Positions 53,488-61,618 are shown, counted from the first letter of the stretch. The stretch: 64,000 nt of DNA from Hyalangium minutum (GCF_000737315.1 NZ_JMCB01000006.1:558001-622000), one strand, 5' to 3'. Program-made: numbers and translations. Notes: generated from the sequence alone by a model not told the origin.

Positions 53488-56265
53488 GTGCGTCCCATGT
53501 CCCTTCGCTGGGTCCTGCTGCTGTGGCTCAGCCTGCTGCTGGGCTGCACCGCGCTGACGCTGCCTCCGAACCGGCCCTTGGCCCGGCCCGTGGCGTTCCG
53601 TGGTGCCTACGAAGAGTTCCCCAGTGGACTCCGGTTGGTGGTGCACGAGGCACCGCACATGTCCCGGGTGACGATGAACGTCTCCTACCGTGTGGGCGCG
53701 ACGGATGAGCCCTCGGGAAAAGAGGGACTGGCACACCTCGTGGAGCACCTCACCTTCCAGGCCCGGCCCGGTGGCGAGAAGGCTCCTCGGCTGGCGAGCC
53801 TGCTGCTGGCCTCGGGTGCCGAGTTCAACGCCGTCACCTCCTATGACAGCACGGACTACTTCTTCACCGCGCCTCCCGAGCAGCTCCCGCTGCTGACGGC
53901 GCTGGAGGCCGAGCGGCTTCGCGACCCTCTGCGGCACGTCACCGAGGAGGATTTCCGCGTCGCGAGGGACGTGGTGGTGGCGGAGCTGCGCCAGCGCTAC
54001 GAGACGAGCCCCGAGGGCGCGCAGCAGCGGTGGCTGCACGAGGTGCTGTTGCCCAGCCACCCCTATGGGCGCACCTCGGGAGGCACTCCAGAGTCGCTGC
54101 AGCGGCTCACGCTGGAGGATGCGCGCGCCTTCGTCCAGGCGCACTACACCTCGGCGCACGTGGTGGTGGTGGTGTCCGGCCCGAAGCCCGCGGACGCGAT
54201 GCGGAGCACGGTGACGCAGGGCTTCGCGGAGCTCACGCTCTCGGGGAAGAGCGGCCCCTCGAAGCCGGTGCGCCGCGAGCCTCCGCCCTTCCCTGCCGAG
54301 TCGCGCGCGCGGGCTCCCAGGGTGGTGCGCAGCGGCCCCGTGGAGCACCCGCGCCTGTGGCTGGTGTGGACCGTGCCGGGCTTGTACTCGGGCATGACGC
54401 CCCAAGCCTTCGCCGCAGAGGGCATGCTGAACAACCGGCTGGCCACGCAGCTCGCCCGCGAGGAGCAGGCCCACGGCAGCTCCGTGACGCTGGAGGTGCT
54501 CGATGGCGTCACGCTCCTCGTCGCCCGCGTGGACTTGATGAAGGCGGAGGATGCCGAGGACGTAGCGGACCTCGTGCTGGATCAGCTCGTGGACCTCTAT
54601 GGGAACCCGGGCAGGCTGGGCGGGCTCACCGCCGCCGCGCGCTCCTCGCTGCTCACCGAGGCCTTCCGCTCCCTGGAGCAGTTCCCCGCCCGCGAGGCGG
54701 CCCGCTTCCTGCGCGCCACGGGCGAGCCGGACTACGTGCAGGGCTGGCCCCAGCAGATCCGCGAAGGGCTCTCCCGGGACCTCGGGCCCTACCTCTACAA
54801 GTACGTGCGGCGAGAGCGCGCCCGCATGCTGCTGATGGTGCCGGAGCAAGCCGGCTCCGGACGCGCCACGGTGGCCGAGCGCTTTGCTCCGCTGGCGGGC
54901 CCAGAGGACTTCGGTGACGAGGAGCGGAGCCTCCCGCCGGGAGCCTCGGACGCGCGCCAGGTGGCCCGCCCTCCAGGGCTGGCCCAGGCCGAGCGCTTCA
55001 TCCTGGGCAACGGCCTCCAGGTGGTGGCGCTGCGCCGCACGGGCATGCCGCTGCTGGAGGCCCGCCTGTGGGTGCGGACGCAGACGCCCACCACCGAGGG
55101 CGCCCTGTCGCTGTCACGGCTCGCGGTCCATGGCTCGTACATGTCCGCGGGCCGCAAGTGGTACCACGGGGCGAAGGTGGGCGCGCGCACCGAGCTCCAG
55201 CTCCGCGAGGAGGGCCAGCCCGTGCTCTCCGTGTCCGCGCCCTCGGGAAACCTCGTTCACGTGCTGGAGGACATGCAGCAGTGGATGTGGGACGCGGAGG
55301 TGGAGCTGCGGCCCTTCGAGGCTGTCCAGGATTGGCAGGTGCGCCAGTTGGAGCGCGAGGCCTCGAGCTCGGACGTGCTCGCCGAGCGTGCGCTGCTGTC
55401 CCGCATGTTCCCCGGCCACCCCTACGGCCTCGCACCGGGCGTGGAGGAGGCGAAGCGGTTCACCGCGTCCCAGGCCACGAAGTGGGTGAAGGAGGAGCTG
55501 AACCCGGACCGGGCGACGCTCCTGCTGGTGGGGGATCTGCCGCCGGCTCCCAAGCTGCGCACCCTGGTGTCGGAGATGCTCGGGCGGTGGCGAGGAAAGG
55601 GCGGACGCGTGGAGCCGCCTCCGGTTCCGCCGCTGCCGCGCCGGAGACAGGTGGTGGTGCTGGACCGGCCCGGTGCCTCTCAAGCGGAGCTGCTGGTGGG
55701 CGTCCGCTGGCCGGAGCTGTCGGCCCAAGAGGACGCGGCGGCGAGCGCGCTGGTGTGGCTGCTGGAGCACCGGCTGGACCGTCAGCTCCGGGAGCGACTG
55801 GGGCTCACCTATGGCGTCCGCGTGGGACATGAGGCCCGGCCGCGCGCCTCGTTGTTAAGAATCCGCGCGGCGGTCGAGCGTGGCGCGGCAGCGGGCGCGC
55901 TGGAGCAGCTCCTCGCCGAGCTGGGCACGCTGGAGGCGGAGCTGCTGCCACGCGAGGTGGTGGAGCTGGCGCGCTGGCAGGTGGCTCGCGGCTATGACTT
56001 GCGCTTCCAGACGTCGGCCGCGGCGGCGGAGCGGCTGCTGGAGCTGGAGCGCCTCGGGCGTCCTCCGGACTTCTGGGAGACGTATCCGGAAGCCATCGCG
56101 GCGGTGACGCCCGAGGCCGTGCAGGCGCTGGTGAGGAAGCTCGGCCTGGGCTCGGAGGCGGTGATCATCCTCGGGGACGCAGCCACGTTGCGGCCGCAAC
56201 TGGAGAGCGCGGGCTACCCGGTGGAGGTGCTGTCCCGGTCCACCCAGCCGAAGCAGGAGCGGTGA
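53488..56265 (+). CDS. M16 family (insulinase-like) zinc peptidase lipoprotein
   Basis: GLAHLVEHL (HxxEH), NAVTSYDST, HPYG repeated, LRERLGLTYGV; lipobox LLGC. Confidence 0.92.
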   Translation: MRPMSLRWVLLLWLSLLLGCTALTLPPNRPLARPVAFRGAYEEFPSGLRLVVHEAPHMSRVTMNVSYRVGATDEPSGKEGLAHLVEHLTFQARPGGEKAPRLASLLLASGAEFNAVTSYDSTDYFFTAPPEQLPLLTALEAERLRDPLRHVTEEDFRVARDVVVAELRQRYETSPEGAQQRWLHEVLLPSHPYGRTSGGTPESLQRLTLEDARAFVQAHYTSAHVVVVVSGPKPADAMRSTVTQGFAELTLSGKSGPSKPVRREPPPFPAESRARAPRVVRSGPVEHPRLWLVWTVPGLYSGMTPQAFAAEGMLNNRLATQLAREEQAHGSSVTLEVLDGVTLLVARVDLMKAEDAEDVADLVLDQLVDLYGNPGRLGGLTAAARSSLLTEAFRSLEQFPAREAARFLRATGEPDYVQGWPQQIREGLSRDLGPYLYKYVRRERARMLLMVPEQAGSGRATVAERFAPLAGPEDFGDEERSLPPGASDARQVARPPGLAQAERFILGNGLQVVALRRTGMPLLEARLWVRTQTPTTEGALSLSRLAVHGSYMSAGRKWYHGAKVGARTELQLREEGQPVLSVSAPSGNLVHVLEDMQQWMWDAEVELRPFEAVQDWQVRQLEREASSSDVLAERALLSRMFPGHPYGLAPGVEEAKRFTASQATKWVKEELNPDRATLLLVGDLPPAPKLRTLVSEMLGRWRGKGGRVEPPPVPPLPRRRQVVVLDRPGASQAELLVGVRWPELSAQEDAAASALVWLLEHRLDRQLRERLGLTYGVRVGHEARPRASLLRIRAAVERGAAAGALEQLLAELGTLEAELLPREVVELARWQVARGYDLRFQTSAAAAERLLELERLGRPPDFWETYPEAIAAVTPEAVQALVRKLGLGSEAVIILGDAATLRPQLESAGYPVEVLSRSTQPKQER

Positions 56266-56320: not shown

Positions 56321-57025
56321 GTGACGGAGTCAGGTGCGGGTGGAGCATCGGAGCGGCCCGAGGGCCAGCGCACGGTGGAGTGCGCCGATGCGCGGGTGTG
56401 GCTGGAGGGCCGGCAGGTGCTGGAGGGCTGCTCGGCCATCACCTCGCTGCCGGACGTGTCCGAGTTCCCCGAGCTCTCGCTGGCCGAGTGGAAGCAGTGG
56501 TTCATCCGCGCGGCCGTCCTCGTCATGTCGAAGGTGCCAGCGCAGGGCGTGGCCATCTTCTACCAGACCGATGTGAAGAAGGACGGGGCCTGGGTGGACA
56601 AGGGGTACCTCATCAGCAAGGCCGCCGAGGAGGCCGGCTGCGAGCTGCTCTGGCACAAGGTGGTGTGCCGGCGGCCCCCCGGCACGGTGACGTTCGGGCG
56701 CCCTGCGTACTCGCACATGCTGTGCTTCTCGCGAGGCATCCGCGTGGACCTGGGCAAGGCCACGCCGGATGTGCTGCCCGACGCGGGCGAGGTGACGTGG
56801 ACGCGCGGCATGGGCCTGCACGCCTGTCTGGCGGCGTGCCGCTTCATCCTCGAGCACACGGCGACGCGCACGGTGGTTGATCCGTTCTGTGGCCACGGCA
56901 CGGTGCTCGCGGTGGCCAACGCGCTGGGCCTGGACGCGGTGGGCGTGGAGCTCAGCCGCAAGCGCGCGAAGAAGGCCCGTGTTCTCCGAGTCACACTGGA
57001 CCGCACAGGCGCCCCCGCCCTTTAG
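56321..57025 (+). CDS. SAM-dependent methyltransferase (beta-class DNA-MTase-like motif order)
   Basis: ITSLPD near the N-terminus, VVDPFCGHGT SAM motif near the C-terminus. Confidence 0.7.
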   Translation: MTESGAGGASERPEGQRTVECADARVWLEGRQVLEGCSAITSLPDVSEFPELSLAEWKQWFIRAAVLVMSKVPAQGVAIFYQTDVKKDGAWVDKGYLISKAAEEAGCELLWHKVVCRRPPGTVTFGRPAYSHMLCFSRGIRVDLGKATPDVLPDAGEVTWTRGMGLHACLAACRFILEHTATRTVVDPFCGHGTVLAVANALGLDAVGVELSRKRAKKARVLRVTLDRTGAPAL

Positions 57026-57247
57026 GGAGGGGCTGTGTCGACTCACAACCGGTCGGGCCCGCGCGGCTGCACCGTGGCCAACAGTTCCCCGAGCCGTGGT
57101 TTGACGCCCCCCCGGCCTCTCGCGTGACATGGGCGTGTGATTGAAGGCTGGACCCGGGGGGGAGCCAGCATGGGTCTTTCAGACAGTTCTTACTGCATCG
57201 CTCCGGGCTCCCCCTTTCGGCCCCGCCTCACCACACGGGGGCACCGC

Positions 57248-57559
57248 ATGAGCCAGGACAGCGCTTCACGCCGCATCATCCATCTCTCGTTCGCCGCGTC
57301 GCTCGGGGAGTACCTGGAGCGCGTCCGGGACCTGGGAGCCATGGAGGGCCACACCGGCGCGGTGGAGCTCAACCCGACCCTGCGGCCCGTGGTGGAGGCC
57401 ATGCACCACGTCCTCGCGGGCGGCGAGGTGGAGGTGCGCGTGGTGCGCGAGGGCCAGCCGGACATCGTCCGGGAGCTGGCGCAGCGCGCAGCGCGGGCCA
57501 CCGTGGAGACCAATGCCCTCAACAAGCAGTCGGAGACGCTGGTTCTCACCGTCGTATGA
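57248..57559 (+). CDS. Small hypothetical protein, first gene of the four-gene operon (alternative start 57170)
   Basis: High GC3; its stop overlaps the kinase ATG (ATGA). Confidence 0.65.
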   Translation: MSQDSASRRIIHLSFAASLGEYLERVRDLGAMEGHTGAVELNPTLRPVVEAMHHVLAGGEVEVRVVREGQPDIVRELAQRAARATVETNALNKQSETLVLTVV

Positions 57560-58908
57560 GCCTGCTCTCACGCATGCGCGGGGGCGTTCGCGCCGCCTTC
57601 CGCCGCTGGGTCCACGCCCAGAACGTCCCCGAGGTCCTCGCGGCCAGCAGCGTGGGCGCGTGGCTGTCCCTCGTCGCGCTGATCCTCGTACTGCTCGCGG
57701 CCGCCACGTGGGCCCCCCGCGCCCAGGAGTTCTTCGGCCTGGACCCGGGTACCGCCCTGCTGTGCCTGGGCCCTGCCCTGGTGGACTTCGCCTTCGCCCT
57801 GCTGCACCGCCGGCGCCAGCACATCGAGACGTGGGGGTGGGTGCTGTCGCTCACCGGCACCGCGGGGCTCCAGTTCTTCGTGGCCAGCCTCATGGCCATC
57901 TCCGCCCCGAGCGGCGCCACCCTCTTCGCCGGCTTCTTCCTCTTCACCGCGGCCTTTCACGGACGAATCTTCCGGGTGACGCCTCGCACGCCGTTCCTCC
58001 CCCTGGGCACGGCGCTGGCGTTGGGGCTGGCCGCCCTCCTGACGCGGCCGGAGAACCTGCCCCTGTTCGGCGTGATCGGCCCGGCGGCGCTGATGGCCGA
58101 GCTCTACCTGGGCACCTTCGCCCTCCAGCATGACCGGACGGCCGCGGAGGCGGAGCGGCTGCGCGCCGCCGTCCAGGCGCAGATGCTGGCCCAGCAGGAG
58201 CGCGACGTGGGCCGCATGTCCCAGGCCCTCACGGAGATCATCCACCACAGCCAGGACATCCGTGACGCGCTGCTGTCGGCGGGCAGCGCCGCGGATCTGC
58301 TCAAGGGGCTCGTCGCCCGCGGAGGCACCCTGGGCCGCGGAGAGCCGGAGCGGCTCGTGCAGCAACTCCACTCGGACCTCTCGCACATCCGCGAGCGCGT
58401 CATGGACATCCACCAGAAGGGCCGCCGCCACATCGGCGGAGAGCCCGAGGGCGTGGACCTGGTGCCGGTGCTGGACTCGGTGCGCCAGAGCGTGGCGCTG
58501 CGCTTCCCCGAAGTGGACATCCAGGTGCAGGCGGACCGCCAGACGGCCCTGCGCGCCTGGGTGCGCGGAGGCACCACGACGCTGCGGCGGGTCGTCGAGA
58601 ACCTCGTCACCAACGCGTGCGAAGGCGATGGCATGCGCGCCGCCGGGAGCGTGCGCATCTCCGCACGCACCGAGCCCCTGAGCGGAAGGCTGGAGATGGT
58701 CATCTCGGACGACGGCCCCGGCTTTCCGCCCGAGCGGCTGGCCGCGCCCATTCAAGGCCTGTCCACCACCAAGCCCCAGGCCACGGGGCTGGGGCTCTAC
58801 ACGAGCGAGTGCCTCATTCGCGCCAGTGGAGGTGTGCTGGAGCGCCAGAACGCGCCTGCGGGAGGCGCGGTGCTGCGAGTCCTACTCCCGAGGGAGGTGC
58901 GCGCATGA
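57556..58908 (+). CDS. Multi-TM sensor histidine kinase with degenerate H-box
   Basis: About six TMs; N box ENLVTNA, G1 DDGPGF, G2 GLGL; H-box position reads SQDIRDAL. Confidence 0.85.
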   Translation: MSLLSRMRGGVRAAFRRWVHAQNVPEVLAASSVGAWLSLVALILVLLAAATWAPRAQEFFGLDPGTALLCLGPALVDFAFALLHRRRQHIETWGWVLSLTGTAGLQFFVASLMAISAPSGATLFAGFFLFTAAFHGRIFRVTPRTPFLPLGTALALGLAALLTRPENLPLFGVIGPAALMAELYLGTFALQHDRTAAEAERLRAAVQAQMLAQQERDVGRMSQALTEIIHHSQDIRDALLSAGSAADLLKGLVARGGTLGRGEPERLVQQLHSDLSHIRERVMDIHQKGRRHIGGEPEGVDLVPVLDSVRQSVALRFPEVDIQVQADRQTALRAWVRGGTTTLRRVVENLVTNACEGDGMRAAGSVRISARTEPLSGRLEMVISDDGPGFPPERLAAPIQGLSTTKPQATGLGLYTSECLIRASGGVLERQNAPAGGAVLRVLLPREVRA

Positions 58909-59633
58909 GCGGAGGAGCCATCTATCAGGAGTCTCTTCGGGTGCTTCGCAAGCTGGCGCTTCCCGAGCAGGCCGAGCGGGACGTGATGGCCGCGCTGGAG
59001 GCGGCGCACCCAGGGCCTCTCGCGCTGCTGTACGAGGCCGGCGTGGAGGCCGGGCTCCAGCGCGAGTCGCTGCTGATCCGCGGCGCGGGCATCTTCCTCA
59101 GCTTCGCCGCGGGCAACCTCGCGGATGATCTCAGCGATGGGGACTGCACGTACTACACGCGGCCGTTCCAGGTCGGGCCCTACGTGCAGTTCCTCCTGCA
59201 GAACATGGCCTGGTCCACGCTGGCACGGGCGGACATCCCCTCGAATGTGCTCACCGAGGCGGCGTTGGTGCTGGCGCAGGCCGCCGGTCCCCAGGCCCTG
59301 GAGGTGCGGACGCTGGAGTGGACGGCGCCCGTCTTCCGGCAGGTGGCCGAGGGGCTCGCGGGGCAGCAGTGGGCCTCGTACCTGCGCCTGCTCTGGGCTG
59401 GGACGCCGCTGGCGGAGTGCTCGGTGGCGGGCCACCTGCTGGGCATCGCCGCCCACGTCGCCGAAGACATCCGCTCCAAGGACCGGCGCTTCTTCAGCAT
59501 GCCCGAGGAGGATCAGCGCGAGGTGGTGCGCTGGGCCCGGGCAGGCATGGAGGGCGTGCGGCGCCAGGGCCTGCGCTGCCTGGACGCGGCGCTGCGCCGA
59601 ATCGATCCCATTCTTCCGGAGGTCACACCATGA
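58905..59633 (+). CDS. Class I isoprenoid-synthase-fold protein (ComQ-like prenyltransferase?)
   Basis: LADDLSDGD (DDxxD) motif, degenerate second motif HVAEDI, all-helical, 242 aa; ATGA overlaps at both ends. Confidence 0.65.
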   Translation: MSGGAIYQESLRVLRKLALPEQAERDVMAALEAAHPGPLALLYEAGVEAGLQRESLLIRGAGIFLSFAAGNLADDLSDGDCTYYTRPFQVGPYVQFLLQNMAWSTLARADIPSNVLTEAALVLAQAAGPQALEVRTLEWTAPVFRQVAEGLAGQQWASYLRLLWAGTPLAECSVAGHLLGIAAHVAEDIRSKDRRFFSMPEEDQREVVRWARAGMEGVRRQGLRCLDAALRRIDPILPEVTP

Positions 59634-60496
59634 GCGCTGAAGCACTGCGGCAGGAGCGAGCGGGCACCGAAGTCACCGCGTACTATGAGGCCAAGACGGA
59701 GGGCATCCTCCAGCGCTACGGGCCCGGGCCCCGGGTGCACTACCACATCGGCCTGGTGGACGACACGCCGCCTCCCGGGCTGCCGCCAGCGGCCCTGCGC
59801 ACGCTCATTCACGAGTCCCAAGAGCTGACCATGCGCGAGCTCGCGCTGGACGCGGGAATGCCGCGCCGGGACAGCCACGTGCTGGATGTCGGCTGCGGGC
59901 TCGGAGGCAGCTCGCTGTACTGGGCCTCCGTGCACCGCGCGCGCGTCACCGCCCTCACGAATGTTCCCTCGCACGTTTCCTGGGTGAACCAATTCGCCGC
60001 CGTGGAGGGCGTGGCGGACCGGGTGAACACCGTGCTGTGCGACGCGCTGGAGCTGCCCGGGCGCGAGTGCTTTGACCTCGTGGTGGCGGTGGAGAGCTCG
60101 TGCTACCTGCCGCGCCGCGCGTGGTTCCGCCGTGTGTACTCGCTGCTGCGGCCGGGCGGCATCCTGGCCATCGCGGACTGCTTCCTCGGCCGGCCCGACC
60201 TGGCCGGGCCGTTCGACCAGTACTGGCGCGCGAAGATCGGCACCGTGGAGGAGTACTTCCGCGCAGCGGCCGCAGAGGGCCTGGAGCTGGAGCTCCACCA
60301 GGACATCTCCGGGCGGGCGGTGAACTTCTGGACGCTGACGCTGGACCTCCTCGCGCGGGAGCGGGCCATGCTGCCGCGCTCGAGCCTCGAAGGCCTGGGC
60401 CGCAGCGAGTCCCAGCGCCAGCACCTGCGGCTGCAGCAGGCCTTCCTCGATGGAGGCCTCCACTACGCGATGATGATCCTCCGGCGCCCGGACTGA
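59630..60496 (+). CDS. SAM-dependent methyltransferase resembling prenyl-diphosphate C-methyltransferases
   Basis: HYHIG, LDVGCGLGGS, VESSCY, EEYFRA and AFLDGGLHY match the GPP 2-C-methyltransferase motif order as I recall it. Confidence 0.75.
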   Translation: MSAEALRQERAGTEVTAYYEAKTEGILQRYGPGPRVHYHIGLVDDTPPPGLPPAALRTLIHESQELTMRELALDAGMPRRDSHVLDVGCGLGGSSLYWASVHRARVTALTNVPSHVSWVNQFAAVEGVADRVNTVLCDALELPGRECFDLVVAVESSCYLPRRAWFRRVYSLLRPGGILAIADCFLGRPDLAGPFDQYWRAKIGTVEEYFRAAAAEGLELELHQDISGRAVNFWTLTLDLLARERAMLPRSSLEGLGRSESQRQHLRLQQAFLDGGLHYAMMILRRPD

Positions 60497-60636
60497 AGGC
60501 CCATCCTCAGGGGTGCCAGCCCCTGCCTGCCTGGCTGCCCTGGGGCCTTGTAGGAGGACCTGCGCCTTTGTCCCATGCCTCTCCGGGGGAGAGCCCCCAG
60601 CCTTCTGGGCAACTCCAACCCAAAAGGGAGACGGAC

Positions 60637-61161
60637 ATGACTTTCAAGCGAATGATGGCTCTGGGTGCGGTGGCTGCGGCGCTGGCGTTCACCGGGTGTC
60701 AGGACCGGACCCGGACCGAGCAGGAGCTGGGCACCGGTGGCTCGGGCACCCCGGTGCAGCAGCCCGCAGGTGAGCAGCGCCCCATGGACTCCACCATTCC
60801 GGGCAGCAGCAACACCATCGGAGGGACTCCCCAGGATCAGACCCAGCCGGGGATCGAGCTGGGCGGCACGGGAGCCACGGGCGGCTCGGGCTCGATGAAT
60901 GACACCGGCGGCACGACCCACGACACGGTGGTCCCGCCGGCCAATGACCTGGACCATGGCAGCTCGGGCAGCGTGCACCAGCCGGGCACGGGGGATTCGC
61001 TGGACACCAGCGGCACCGGTGGCTCGGGCATGGACATGGACACCAACACCCTGCCCCAGGACAGCCTGGACGAGAAGAACCGGGACCCGAGCACCCTGGA
61101 TCAGCGCAACCAGCTCGATGACCAGGAGAACATCGGCGACACGAACACCGAGGCCCGCTAG
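60637..61161 (+). CDS. Low-complexity Gly/Thr/Asp-rich lipoprotein
   Basis: Lipobox FTGC; repeated GTGGSG; GGGAG RBS. Confidence 0.7.
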   Translation: MTFKRMMALGAVAAALAFTGCQDRTRTEQELGTGGSGTPVQQPAGEQRPMDSTIPGSSNTIGGTPQDQTQPGIELGGTGATGGSGSMNDTGGTTHDTVVPPANDLDHGSSGSVHQPGTGDSLDTSGTGGSGMDMDTNTLPQDSLDEKNRDPSTLDQRNQLDDQENIGDTNTEAR

Positions 61162-61243: not shown

Positions 61244-61618
61244 GTGAGCTTCGGGGCGGAGGCAGTGGCCGCGTACGAGCTGAAGATGGAGAACGCCTAC
61301 GAGTACAAGGGTGACATCCGCTGGGCGCTGACCGCCGAGGGCAAGACGCGCAAGGGCAAGGTGCCGGCGAGGGATCAGATCGCACCGGAGCTGCTGACCT
61401 TCAGTGACTGCATCATCGAAGGACGGGACCCCGAGCCGGACGGCTGGGAGGGGTTGGCGGACGTGCGCATCATCCGCGCGCTCTACGAGTCCGCGCGCAC
61501 GGGCCAGCCGGTGAAGCTGGCGCCCTTCGAGAAGCCCCAGCGGCCGACGAAGGAGCAGGAGGAGCACCGCCCACCGGCGAAGGAGCCCGACTACGTCAAC
61601 GTGCAGCCTCCGTCGTAG
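61244..61618 (+). pseudogene. C-terminal fragment of a Gfo/Idh/MocA oxidoreductase
   Basis: DQIAPELLTFSDCI, EGLADVRIIRALYESARTG; no Rossmann domain; in-frame stop at 61229-61231. Confidence 0.8.

Follow-up and report, generated by a model that had tools for sequence, protein, structure and literature searches.

Results

A four-gene cassette in Hyalangium minutum

We analyzed a 64,000-nucleotide stretch of the Hyalangium minutum genome (GCF_000737315.1 NZ_JMCB01000006.1:558001-622000; hereafter the window, to which all coordinates refer) and describe a cassette of four genes, all on the + strand, that lies within 57.1-60.5 kb. An earlier note on this DNA, made from the sequence alone, had read these genes as a candidate isoprenoid signaling system. 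The open reading frames (ORFs) follow each other in the order small protein, kinase, DDxxD protein, and methyltransferase (MT):

57248..57559, + strand: small protein, 103 aa; universal partner of the DDxxD protein
57556..58908, + strand: membrane histidine-kinase-type protein with six transmembrane (TM) segments, 450 aa
58905..59633, + strand: DDxxD protein, predicted trans-isoprenyl diphosphate synthase (class I alpha) fold, 242 aa
59630..60496, + strand: homologue of S-adenosylmethionine-dependent prenyl diphosphate C6-methyltransferases, 288 aa

An ATGA start/stop overlap is present at each of the three junctions (57556, 58905, and 59630), and the ORF calls bear out the chain of overlapping genes described earlier. 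The earlier note had placed the left edge of the cassette at 57170, where an in-frame ATG does exist that would extend the small protein to 129 aa, but the lengths of its orthologues (101-105 aa) favor a start at 57248. The arrangement is not a product of chance, since every protein has conserved homologues and the layout recurs in dozens of Myxococcota genomes. The families of the DDxxD protein and of the small protein are unannotated, and the set looks like an uncharacterized isoprenoid-based modification or signaling system.

The DDxxD protein is predicted to adopt an isoprenoid-synthase fold

Searches revealed no significant match of the DDxxD protein in Pfam, NCBIfam, PADLOC, or, with phmmer and hmmsearch, the sequences of the Protein Data Bank (PDB); in Pfam and NCBIfam there was no match at E <= 0.1, the polyprenyl synthase profile PF00348 (polyprenyl_synt) included. 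When the family profile was run in full against 1.84 billion cluster representatives, ~284 members were retrieved. Those homologues that carry a name are all termed "hypothetical" and come from Hyalangium, Myxococcus, Pyxidicoccus, Stigmatella, Archangium, Vitiosangium, Sorangium, and uncultured Deltaproteobacteria/Myxococcota. The AlphaFold2 model, generated from a 70-sequence alignment, is all-helical, with a predicted local distance difference test score (pLDDT) of 94.8 and a predicted template modeling score (pTM) of 0.91. When this model was compared with the PDB using Foldseek, the top matches were exclusively short-chain trans-isoprenyl diphosphate synthases (IDS) and the non-elongating prenyltransferase MoeN5 (5b02, 5b0l, and 5b0m; template modeling score ~0.68-0.70). 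The IDS matches were a geranylgeranyl diphosphate synthase (GGPPS; 4lfe) and farnesyl diphosphate synthases (FPPS; 2ftz, 2for, and 1rqi), all with a score of ~0.7 and a probability of 1.0. Model and structural matches agree with the fold that had been proposed for this protein, and they support its assignment to an undescribed family with an isoprenoid-synthase fold.

Residue conservation was counted over 115 diverse members. The first Asp-rich motif (FARM) has the form D74-D75-x-x-D78-G-[DE], with D74, D75, and D78 present in at least 111 of them, and reads D74-D75-L-S-D78 in the window. The second motif, already described as degenerate, is indeed non-canonical: it is E-D188-I-R-S191-K-D193-R-R195 in the window and x-D188-x-x-[ST]191-x-D193-x-R195 in the family, where D188, D193, and R195 are essentially invariant. 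Position 187 is occupied by T, E, G, or A, which departs from the DDxxD of a canonical second Asp-rich motif (SARM). In addition, Y83, E133, W139, Q155, Y159, and W164 are kept in 77-90% of the members. The best PDB sequence match of the family profile was 4lfe, at a non-significant E value of 0.6, with "HVAEDIRS" aligned to "FQVRDDILD"; according to this alignment, the SARM would be replaced by x-D-x-x-[ST]. Chain elongation by the DDxxD protein is therefore unlikely, because the SARM that elongation needs is absent.

The methyltransferase resembles C6-specific prenyl diphosphate methyltransferases

The 288-aa MT contains all three motifs that had been reported for it (HYHIG, GCGLGGS, and ESSCY). 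Its best PDB sequence matches were 9tb4, a C6-farnesyl diphosphate (FPP) methyltransferase (C6-FPP-MT; E 3e-49, residues 13-252), and 7fbh, the geranyl diphosphate (GPP) C6-methyltransferase BezA of benzastatin biosynthesis (E 4e-48). The MT is ~40% identical to both, which share 43% with each other. The earlier note had called it a methyltransferase of the prenyl diphosphate type and compared it with GPP 2-C-methyltransferase; the PDB matches uphold the general type but place the protein with BezA and C6-FPP-MT instead of the GPP 2-C family, for which the match to 4f84 reached only E 3e-7 and the NCBIfam model NF041943 scored 38 bits against a cut-off of 400 bits.

The residues described for C6-FPP-MT, namely, the catalytic Glu, Tyr37, Phe243-Trp244, and the essential His194 (PMC12929941), were mapped across 36 cassette orthologues. 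E155 of the MT corresponds to the catalytic Glu (Glu165 in C6-FPP-MT, Glu170 in the other enzyme) and is kept in 31/36, F233-W234 corresponds to Phe243-Trp244 in all 36, and Y30, equivalent to Tyr37, is retained within 31-36 of the 36. The end of the pocket differs, with C184/F195/W199 in place of H194/I205/Y209 in C6-FPP-MT and V199/W210/F214 in BezA. Trp210 of BezA is a chain-length gate, and the W210A substitution turns BezA into an FPP enzyme (PMC10881772). Since C184 and F195 replace His194 and Trp210, the specificity of neither characterized enzyme can be assigned to the MT, although the bulk of F195 and W199 is a weak hint at a pocket sized for GPP. Judged from sequence, the MT represents a third clade of the C6 prenyl diphosphate methyltransferase family, beside BezA and C6-FPP-MT.

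The small protein and the kinase

The small protein was modeled with AlphaFold2 from 38 diverse homologues (pLDDT 79.6). The model contains helices at residues 17-28, 46-56, and 71-94, a short hairpin, a confident extended stretch (57-70), and a disordered tail (95-103), which reads SETLVLTVV in the window. Y22, G30, G37, G58, G59, G69, and N89 are invariant in the family alignment, while the last ~10 residues differ between clades, as illustrated by AAG[FY]Y[LV]T-x-x in Archangium, Sorangium, and several metagenome-assembled genomes (MAGs) and by GDTLSATV in Myxococcus. The protein is composed of a conserved body of ~90 aa and a disordered, clade-variable tail of ~10 aa. It has no PDB sequence match, and its interpretation as an NHLP or Nif11 leader, a receiver, a STAS domain, or another known fold found no family, PDB-sequence, or Foldseek support.

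In the kinase, Pfam detects HATPase_c (PF02518) at residues 341-447 (E 7e-16), and named kinases in Pfam and NCBIfam are matched by this catalytic domain alone. Its N, G1, and G2 boxes are invariant among 50 orthologues. Hydropathy revealed six hydrophobic segments between residues ~27 and 190, connected by loops of at most 12 residues as judged by eye, which is consistent with the roughly six-TM, short-looped kinase of the earlier description; residues ~195-260 form a coiled helix that resembles a dimerization and histidine phosphotransfer (DHp) domain. From the positive charge of the N terminus, both ends of the protein are predicted to lie on the inner side (N-in, C-in). Within the membrane domain, the loop with the highest conservation in the 50-orthologue alignment is G-R137-x-x-R140-V-T-P-x-x-P146-F147; this basic loop, with R137, R140, P146, and F147, would face the cytoplasm under the predicted topology.

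The H-box of the kinase family is LGYNHDINNxL, and the His of HDxNN is present in 39 of the 50 orthologues. Kinases of the Hyalangium clade, including that of the window, carry IIxH-[ST]-[QE]-D, with Gln or Glu at the canonical position and a His two residues upstream; no HisKA match was obtained with Pfam for the window kinase. Residues 230-233 (58243-58254) may mark a shifted or lost phospho-acceptor in this clade.

Conservation and variation of the cassette in Myxococcota

A scan by pattern and tblastn, using one genome per species, identified 60 loci, and nine more came from contig look-ups; the tally below is based on 66 locus rows, which represent 65 distinct loci. Flanking genes were assigned by targeted tblastn and from Pfam-annotated contigs, as stop-to-stop ORF clustering was too noisy at 70% GC. 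The 60 scanned loci all belong to Myxococcota, bar a few evidently mislabeled records. Among the records are two titled "Comamonas sp. KCTC 72670" and "MAG: Klebsiella pneumoniae" (L012 and L043), whose cassettes resemble those of Myxococcus (68%) or Deltaproteobacteria; mislabeling or contamination of these assemblies is probable.

The small gene adjoins the DDxxD gene in 62 of the 66 rows, whereas the kinase gene is present in 49 and the MT gene in 36, and 30 rows contain the complete set of four. The conserved core of the cassette is thus formed by the small protein and the DDxxD protein, and the kinase and the MT are each dispensable in whole clades. The joint conservation that the earlier note had called for was found in Hyalangium, Myxococcus (including M. 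xanthus), Pyxidicoccus, and Corallococcus, where the gene order of the window is kept, and in several distant Myxococcota MAGs, two of which (L052 and L055) show the same order at just 40-48% identity. The association persists despite permuted order (L039, L051, and L054) and divergent orientation (L056 and L058) in distant loci of 31-50% identity. Between the window and Hyalangium versicolor, identities are 61% for the small protein, 76% for the kinase, 86% for the DDxxD protein, and 71% for the MT.

Gene fusions provide a further line of evidence. The DDxxD protein and the MT are fused in P0133, P0135, P0142, P0146, and P0157 and form a single ORF in L058, P0184 contains the two in reverse order, and P0189 is a natural fusion of the small protein with the DDxxD protein. 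Because of shared phylogeny, the locus counts are not independent of each other; this does not apply to the fusions or to the rearranged loci of distant lineages, which constitute the stronger evidence. Two further candidates, P0164 (DyP, small protein, kinase, and DDxxD protein; 1187 aa) and P0152, were rejected as multi-domain fusions: they contain long Arg-rich out-of-frame stretches and were therefore treated as frameshifted gene calls that inform on gene order only.

The transducer and the MT vary between lineages. Fourteen rows have the small gene but no kinase gene, and in 9 of them a STAND protein (AAA_16-TPR) adjoins the cassette. At its N terminus, this protein carries one of two output domains: an adenylate/guanylate cyclase (Guanylate_cyc) when encoded on the same strand, or an OmpR-type DNA-binding domain (Trans_reg_C) when encoded divergently. 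It is as if the signal transducer had been swapped, with the kinase replaced by a STAND regulator in several lineages. Examples of these proteins, which comprise 1000-1100 aa, are encoded at L001:4317-7364, L065:5102-8443, L066:4720-7845, and L067:5189-8329. The MT is absent from the cassettes of Archangium and Vitiosangium, which are instead preceded by genes for a DyP-type peroxidase and for a receiver-like protein of 122 aa.

A number of side observations were made at these loci. The two genes in front of MT-less cassettes are exemplified by L004:5122-6263 of Archangium lansingense, with 13 similar loci. The short DyP-type peroxidase matches Dyp_perox_C at E 1.5e-21, and its gene also stands alongside some distant cassettes (L039, L048, L053, L056, and L059). 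The 122-aa protein matches Response_reg at E 0.005 and, by eye, has Ala at the acceptor Asp position. In P0263 (722 aa) and P0266 (525 aa), a divergent DDxxD domain is fused to an N-terminal domain with an HExxH motif (HEFFH or HEYCH); this domain has no significant Pfam match and may represent a link to metallopeptidases. L050:7001-8468 contains a tandem pair of DDxxD paralogues beside a small-kinase gene pair that is oriented divergently. In Myxococcaceae bacterium GXIMD 01537 (L064:7001-7186), the DDxxD gene has decayed to its first 62 codons between an intact kinase and an intact MT gene, and at L061:7001-7679 it is frameshifted and the small gene is missing.

Neighboring genes

Directly upstream of the cassette in the window lies a gene for a secreted-looking M16 (insulinase) peptidase of 925 aa with an HxxEH motif (53488-56265, + strand). 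We considered it as a maturation protease of the cassette, but its synteny is limited to three Hyalangium loci and it is probably unrelated. It is followed by a gene for a 234-aa protein (56321-57025, + strand) in which a DNA methylase domain (N6_N4_Mtase, E 3e-6) is represented by its C-terminal portion alone. This protein is 71-87% identical across Myxococcaceae, exceeding the cassette kinase and MT, but its distance to the cassette varies in this family and it is missing at distant loci, and it was rejected as a cassette member. Downstream, a Gly/Thr/Asp-rich protein of 177 aa with a lipoprotein-type signal (…LAFTGC) is encoded at 60628-61161 (+ strand); it follows the MT gene in Myxococcaceae loci, with conservation limited to its N terminus. 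The 124-aa ORF at 61244-61618 (+ strand) matches just the last 50 positions of GFO_IDH_MocA_C (E 6e-7) and appears to be what remains of a truncated oxidoreductase gene. Between 56.0 and 61.5 kb, scans for promoters, terminators, and Rfam families found nothing. An anti-phage defense system was also considered and discarded, as the sole PADLOC match was a generic MT domain.

Discussion

Comparison with known systems

The full-text literature search found no paper on this cassette, but its components resemble parts of several known systems. The analogy with ComQ/ComX/ComP drawn in the earlier note is reasonable: the ComQ-ComX-ComP(-ComA) system of Bacillus likewise combines, in one operon, a FARM-only IDS-like enzyme with a small protein encoded alongside it and a histidine kinase with multiple TM segments. 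However, ComX has ~55 aa and is prenylated on Trp, whereas the small protein of the cassette has 103 aa and no Trp. ComQ, ComX, and the N terminus of ComP co-diversify into pherotypes, whereas the enzyme is the most conserved gene of the cassette. ComP is of the HisKA_3 type, in contrast to the HDxNNxL-type H-box of the cassette kinase family. ComA has no counterpart at the cassette, and the Gln adjacent to the SARM is replaced by His in the DDxxD protein (PMC13290415).

An even closer parallel, which had not been named before, is PalP-PalX-PalQ of Paenibacillus alvei, composed of a kinase, a precursor of ~80 aa in which a folded leader of 72 aa precedes a core of 8 aa, and an IDS-fold prenyltransferase (PMC10853753). 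PalQ, formerly annotated as a terpene synthase, is distant from all named subfamilies and binds its small partner, and both ComQ and PalQ are devoid of a canonical SARM (PMC10853753). The cassette shares with PalPXQ the same three component types, there is no response regulator among the three Pal genes, and the body and tail of the small protein resemble the PalX leader and core in their proportions. Differences are that PalX has an NHLP-type leader and ends in Trp, neither of which applies to the small protein, that PalQ retains the SARM Asp residues D200 and D204, and that the Pal cluster contains no MT and occurs in Firmicutes instead of Myxococcota. The likeness of the DDxxD protein to ComQ and PalQ is drawn from published descriptions of these enzymes. 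The characterized trans-IDS-like peptide prenyltransferases all target Trp, which they recognize with a Gln that adjoins the SARM (PMC13290415). Like the members of this group (ComQ [IPR033965], PalQ, and the P domain of ChrPC), the DDxxD protein has kept the FARM and shows a lost or repurposed SARM.

For the MT, full-length homology, the catalytic Glu, Tyr30, and the Phe-Trp pair are shared with the Streptomyces enzymes BezA (7fbh) and C6-FPP-MT/SvaMT (9tb4) (PMC12929941). The partners of these enzymes are the aromatic prenyltransferase pathway of benzastatin and the terpene cyclase SvaTC, respectively, whereas the partner in the cassette is neither. In recent work, C6 methyltransferases have been placed only with Actinomycetota terpene cyclases and benzastatin biosynthesis (PMC12929941, PMC12723460). 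The pair of GPP 2-C-methyltransferase and 2-methylisoborneol synthase is another precedent for a class I enzyme that receives a prenyl diphosphate already methylated by an S-adenosylmethionine-dependent enzyme, but similarity to this MT is remote and the cassette contains no cyclase of the 2-methylisoborneol synthase type. MoeN5, one of the Foldseek matches of the DDxxD model, is an IDS-fold enzyme without a canonical SARM that transfers a prenyl group to an acceptor other than isopentenyl diphosphate (IPP). It differs from the DDxxD protein in its genomic context and in its acceptor, a lipid-linked intermediate, and shows no detectable sequence similarity to it.

A tentative mechanism and the evidence against it

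Taken together, we consider that the cassette is best explained, with a probability of roughly 45%, by a trans-IDS-like prenyltransferase that would act, along with its small partner, on a prenyl diphosphate methylated at C6, the partner being either the acceptor or an obligatory subunit, and that would be coupled to a signal transducer. As part of the same explanation and sharing its probability, the cassette would be specific to Myxococcota and built on a FARM-only enzyme with an obligatory 103-aa partner. The BezA-family MT would methylate a short, GPP- or FPP-sized prenyl diphosphate at C6. The DDxxD enzyme would bind the product via Mg2+ at D74/D75/D78, ionize it, and pass the methyl-prenyl cation to an acceptor instead of elongating it with IPP. 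By analogy with ComQ/ComX and PalQ/PalX, the likeliest acceptor or essential co-subunit would be the small protein, and either the lipidated product or the enzyme complex itself would be coupled to the transducer. Since the six-TM kinase is nearly devoid of extracellular loops, it would read a membrane-embedded or cytoplasmic cue. The substrate, the transfer reaction, the acceptor, and any sensing are what we infer in this scheme. It is solid that the MT homologue and the FARM-only IDS-fold enzyme work together, that the latter works with the small protein, and that a signal transducer, of one exchangeable type or another, usually accompanies this enzyme unit; the ATGA translational coupling and the gene fusions argue for this functional coupling. 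The explanation draws further on the predicted fold, the kept FARM and replaced SARM, the family of the MT, the co-occurrence counts, the transducer swap, and the PalX-like proportions of the small protein.

Several observations weigh against this explanation. The position of the Gln in the FQxxDD element of 4lfe is H184 in the DDxxD protein (His in 69/115 and Gln in 9/115 members), and the window cassette lacks both the Gln upstream of the SARM and the acceptor-Trp precursor that mark the trans-IDS-like peptide Trp prenyltransferases. The small protein of the window contains no Trp at all, nor do the tails of ~60 orthologues, and it is therefore not a ComX-type substrate in the strict sense. 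It has no Pfam or NCBIfam match, NHLP and Nif11 included, and a Foldseek search of its model against the PDB returned nothing below E 1. Its tail is near-invariant within Archangium, which argues against pherotype-like diversification, and the DDxxD enzyme is the slowest-evolving of the four genes when compared with H. versicolor, unlike in pherotype systems. The small-DDxxD fusion suggests a stable subunit or complex rather than a released pheromone. Minimal loci without a transducer exist, containing either the small and DDxxD genes only (L068) or these two followed by the MT gene (L069, Sorangium). The H-box of the window kinase is IIHHSQDIRDAL, in which residue 233, where the canonical His belongs, is Gln. 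Lastly, no response regulator is encoded within ~3.5 kb of either flank of the cassette in the window, which agrees with the earlier note, and no exporter or protease gene adjoins the cassette.

Alternative explanations

We regard a homoterpene pathway as unlikely. The MT would generate a 6-methyl prenyl diphosphate that the DDxxD protein, as an IDS-derived type I terpene synthase, would convert by cyclization or hydrolysis into a volatile C11 or C16 terpenoid; the small protein would serve as an accessory subunit. Regulation of the pathway, or a response to it, would be all that the kinase or STAND protein contributes. Such a pathway is in line with the characterized BezA/C6-FPP-MT/GPP methyltransferase-type enzymes, which outside benzastatin biosynthesis are all paired with a terpene cyclase (PMC12929941, PMC12723460), and substrate channeling would follow from the DDxxD-MT fusions. 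The invariant DDxxD and the conserved Y83, W139, Y159, and W164 are reminiscent of cation-stabilizing pockets. The second motif can be read both ways: it retains the D-[ILV]-x-[ST] portion of the NSE/DTE motif of type I terpene cyclases, so that D188 and S/T191 fit the triad (N/D)Dxx(S/T)xxxE, but the N and E ligands are absent, the first position being variable and the last an invariant Arg (position 195). Moreover, there is no terpene-synthase match in Pfam or the PDB, the nearest structures are IDS and not cyclases, and terpene synthases need no co-conserved 100-aa partner, which in this case is more constant than the MT.

It is improbable that the DDxxD protein is a dedicated or irregular prenyl diphosphate synthase that, with the small protein as a non-catalytic subunit, condenses C5 or methylated units and thereby supplies or extends the MT substrate. 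FPPS and GGPPS are its best structural matches and the GGPPS 4lfe its sole, non-significant, PDB sequence match, and the G153-x-Q155 element and the R-x-G-P after the FARM recall IDS regions by eye. Heteromeric IDS with small subunits are established, for example, hexa- and heptaprenyl synthases. Nevertheless, the SARM DDxxD essential for elongation is absent throughout the family, the protein is ~40-50 aa shorter than the matched IDS and escapes PF00348 even at E 0.1, and the small protein is not IDS-like. Equally improbable is a sensor module in which the DDxxD and small proteins bind, and perhaps slowly turn over, prenyl diphosphates and inform the kinase or STAND protein of the state of isoprenoids or the membrane. 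This would account for the transducer of interchangeable type that almost always stands beside the small-DDxxD pair, for the predicted cytoplasmic and basic nature of the most conserved loop in the TM domain of the kinase, and for the absence of product-export genes; but the invariant metal-binding FARM, the conserved aromatic pocket, and the fusion to a biosynthetic MT favor catalysis, and transducer-less loci exist. That unrelated genes are adjacent merely through the shared ancestry of close genomes is already disfavored and very improbable. Many loci do come from one family-level clade, which makes counts non-independent, and the flanking M16 peptidase and DNA-methylase-like genes are syntenic just locally, but the linkage of the cassette genes outlasts order permutation and strand inversion in distant lineages at 31-50% identity, and independent gene fusions exist.

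Implications

Until now, prenyl diphosphate methyltransferases were linked either to terpene cyclases, yielding homoterpenes, or to a single aromatic prenylation pathway. In the cassette described here, such an MT is wired, and in some genomes fused, to a member of an undescribed IDS-fold family that comes with its own small partner and a signal transducer. If the DDxxD enzyme is a transferase, trans-IDS-like prenylation would extend beyond tryptophan, and methylated prenyl donors would enter protein and peptide modification. If it is a synthase, it would represent a new sequence class of terpene synthases that is invisible to current genome-mining models (Pfam and antiSMASH-type rules).

The cassette is of a known kind, namely, that of an isoprenoid enzyme, a small protein, and a kinase, but there is a realistic chance that it is more than that, should non-Trp methyl-prenylation prove true. 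In this bolder form of the prenyltransferase explanation, which we consider unlikely, the trans-IDS-like transferase would place a C6-methylated ("homo") prenyl group on a residue other than Trp in its ~100-aa partner, a lipidation of a new kind for bacterial proteins or peptides, and the product would be a membrane or intracellular cue that is read by the loop-less six-TM kinase in some Myxococcota and by TPR-containing STAND cyclases or transcription factors in others. A ComX-like circuit would then have been reinvented in social Gram-negative bacteria, with a methyl-prenyl chemistry not known from any peptide. Fruiting-body development in Myxococcus and its relatives depends on cell-cell signaling, and few of the signals involved are chemically defined. 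The cassette is conserved, genetically tractable, and present in M. xanthus, which makes it a concrete signaling candidate that can be tested.

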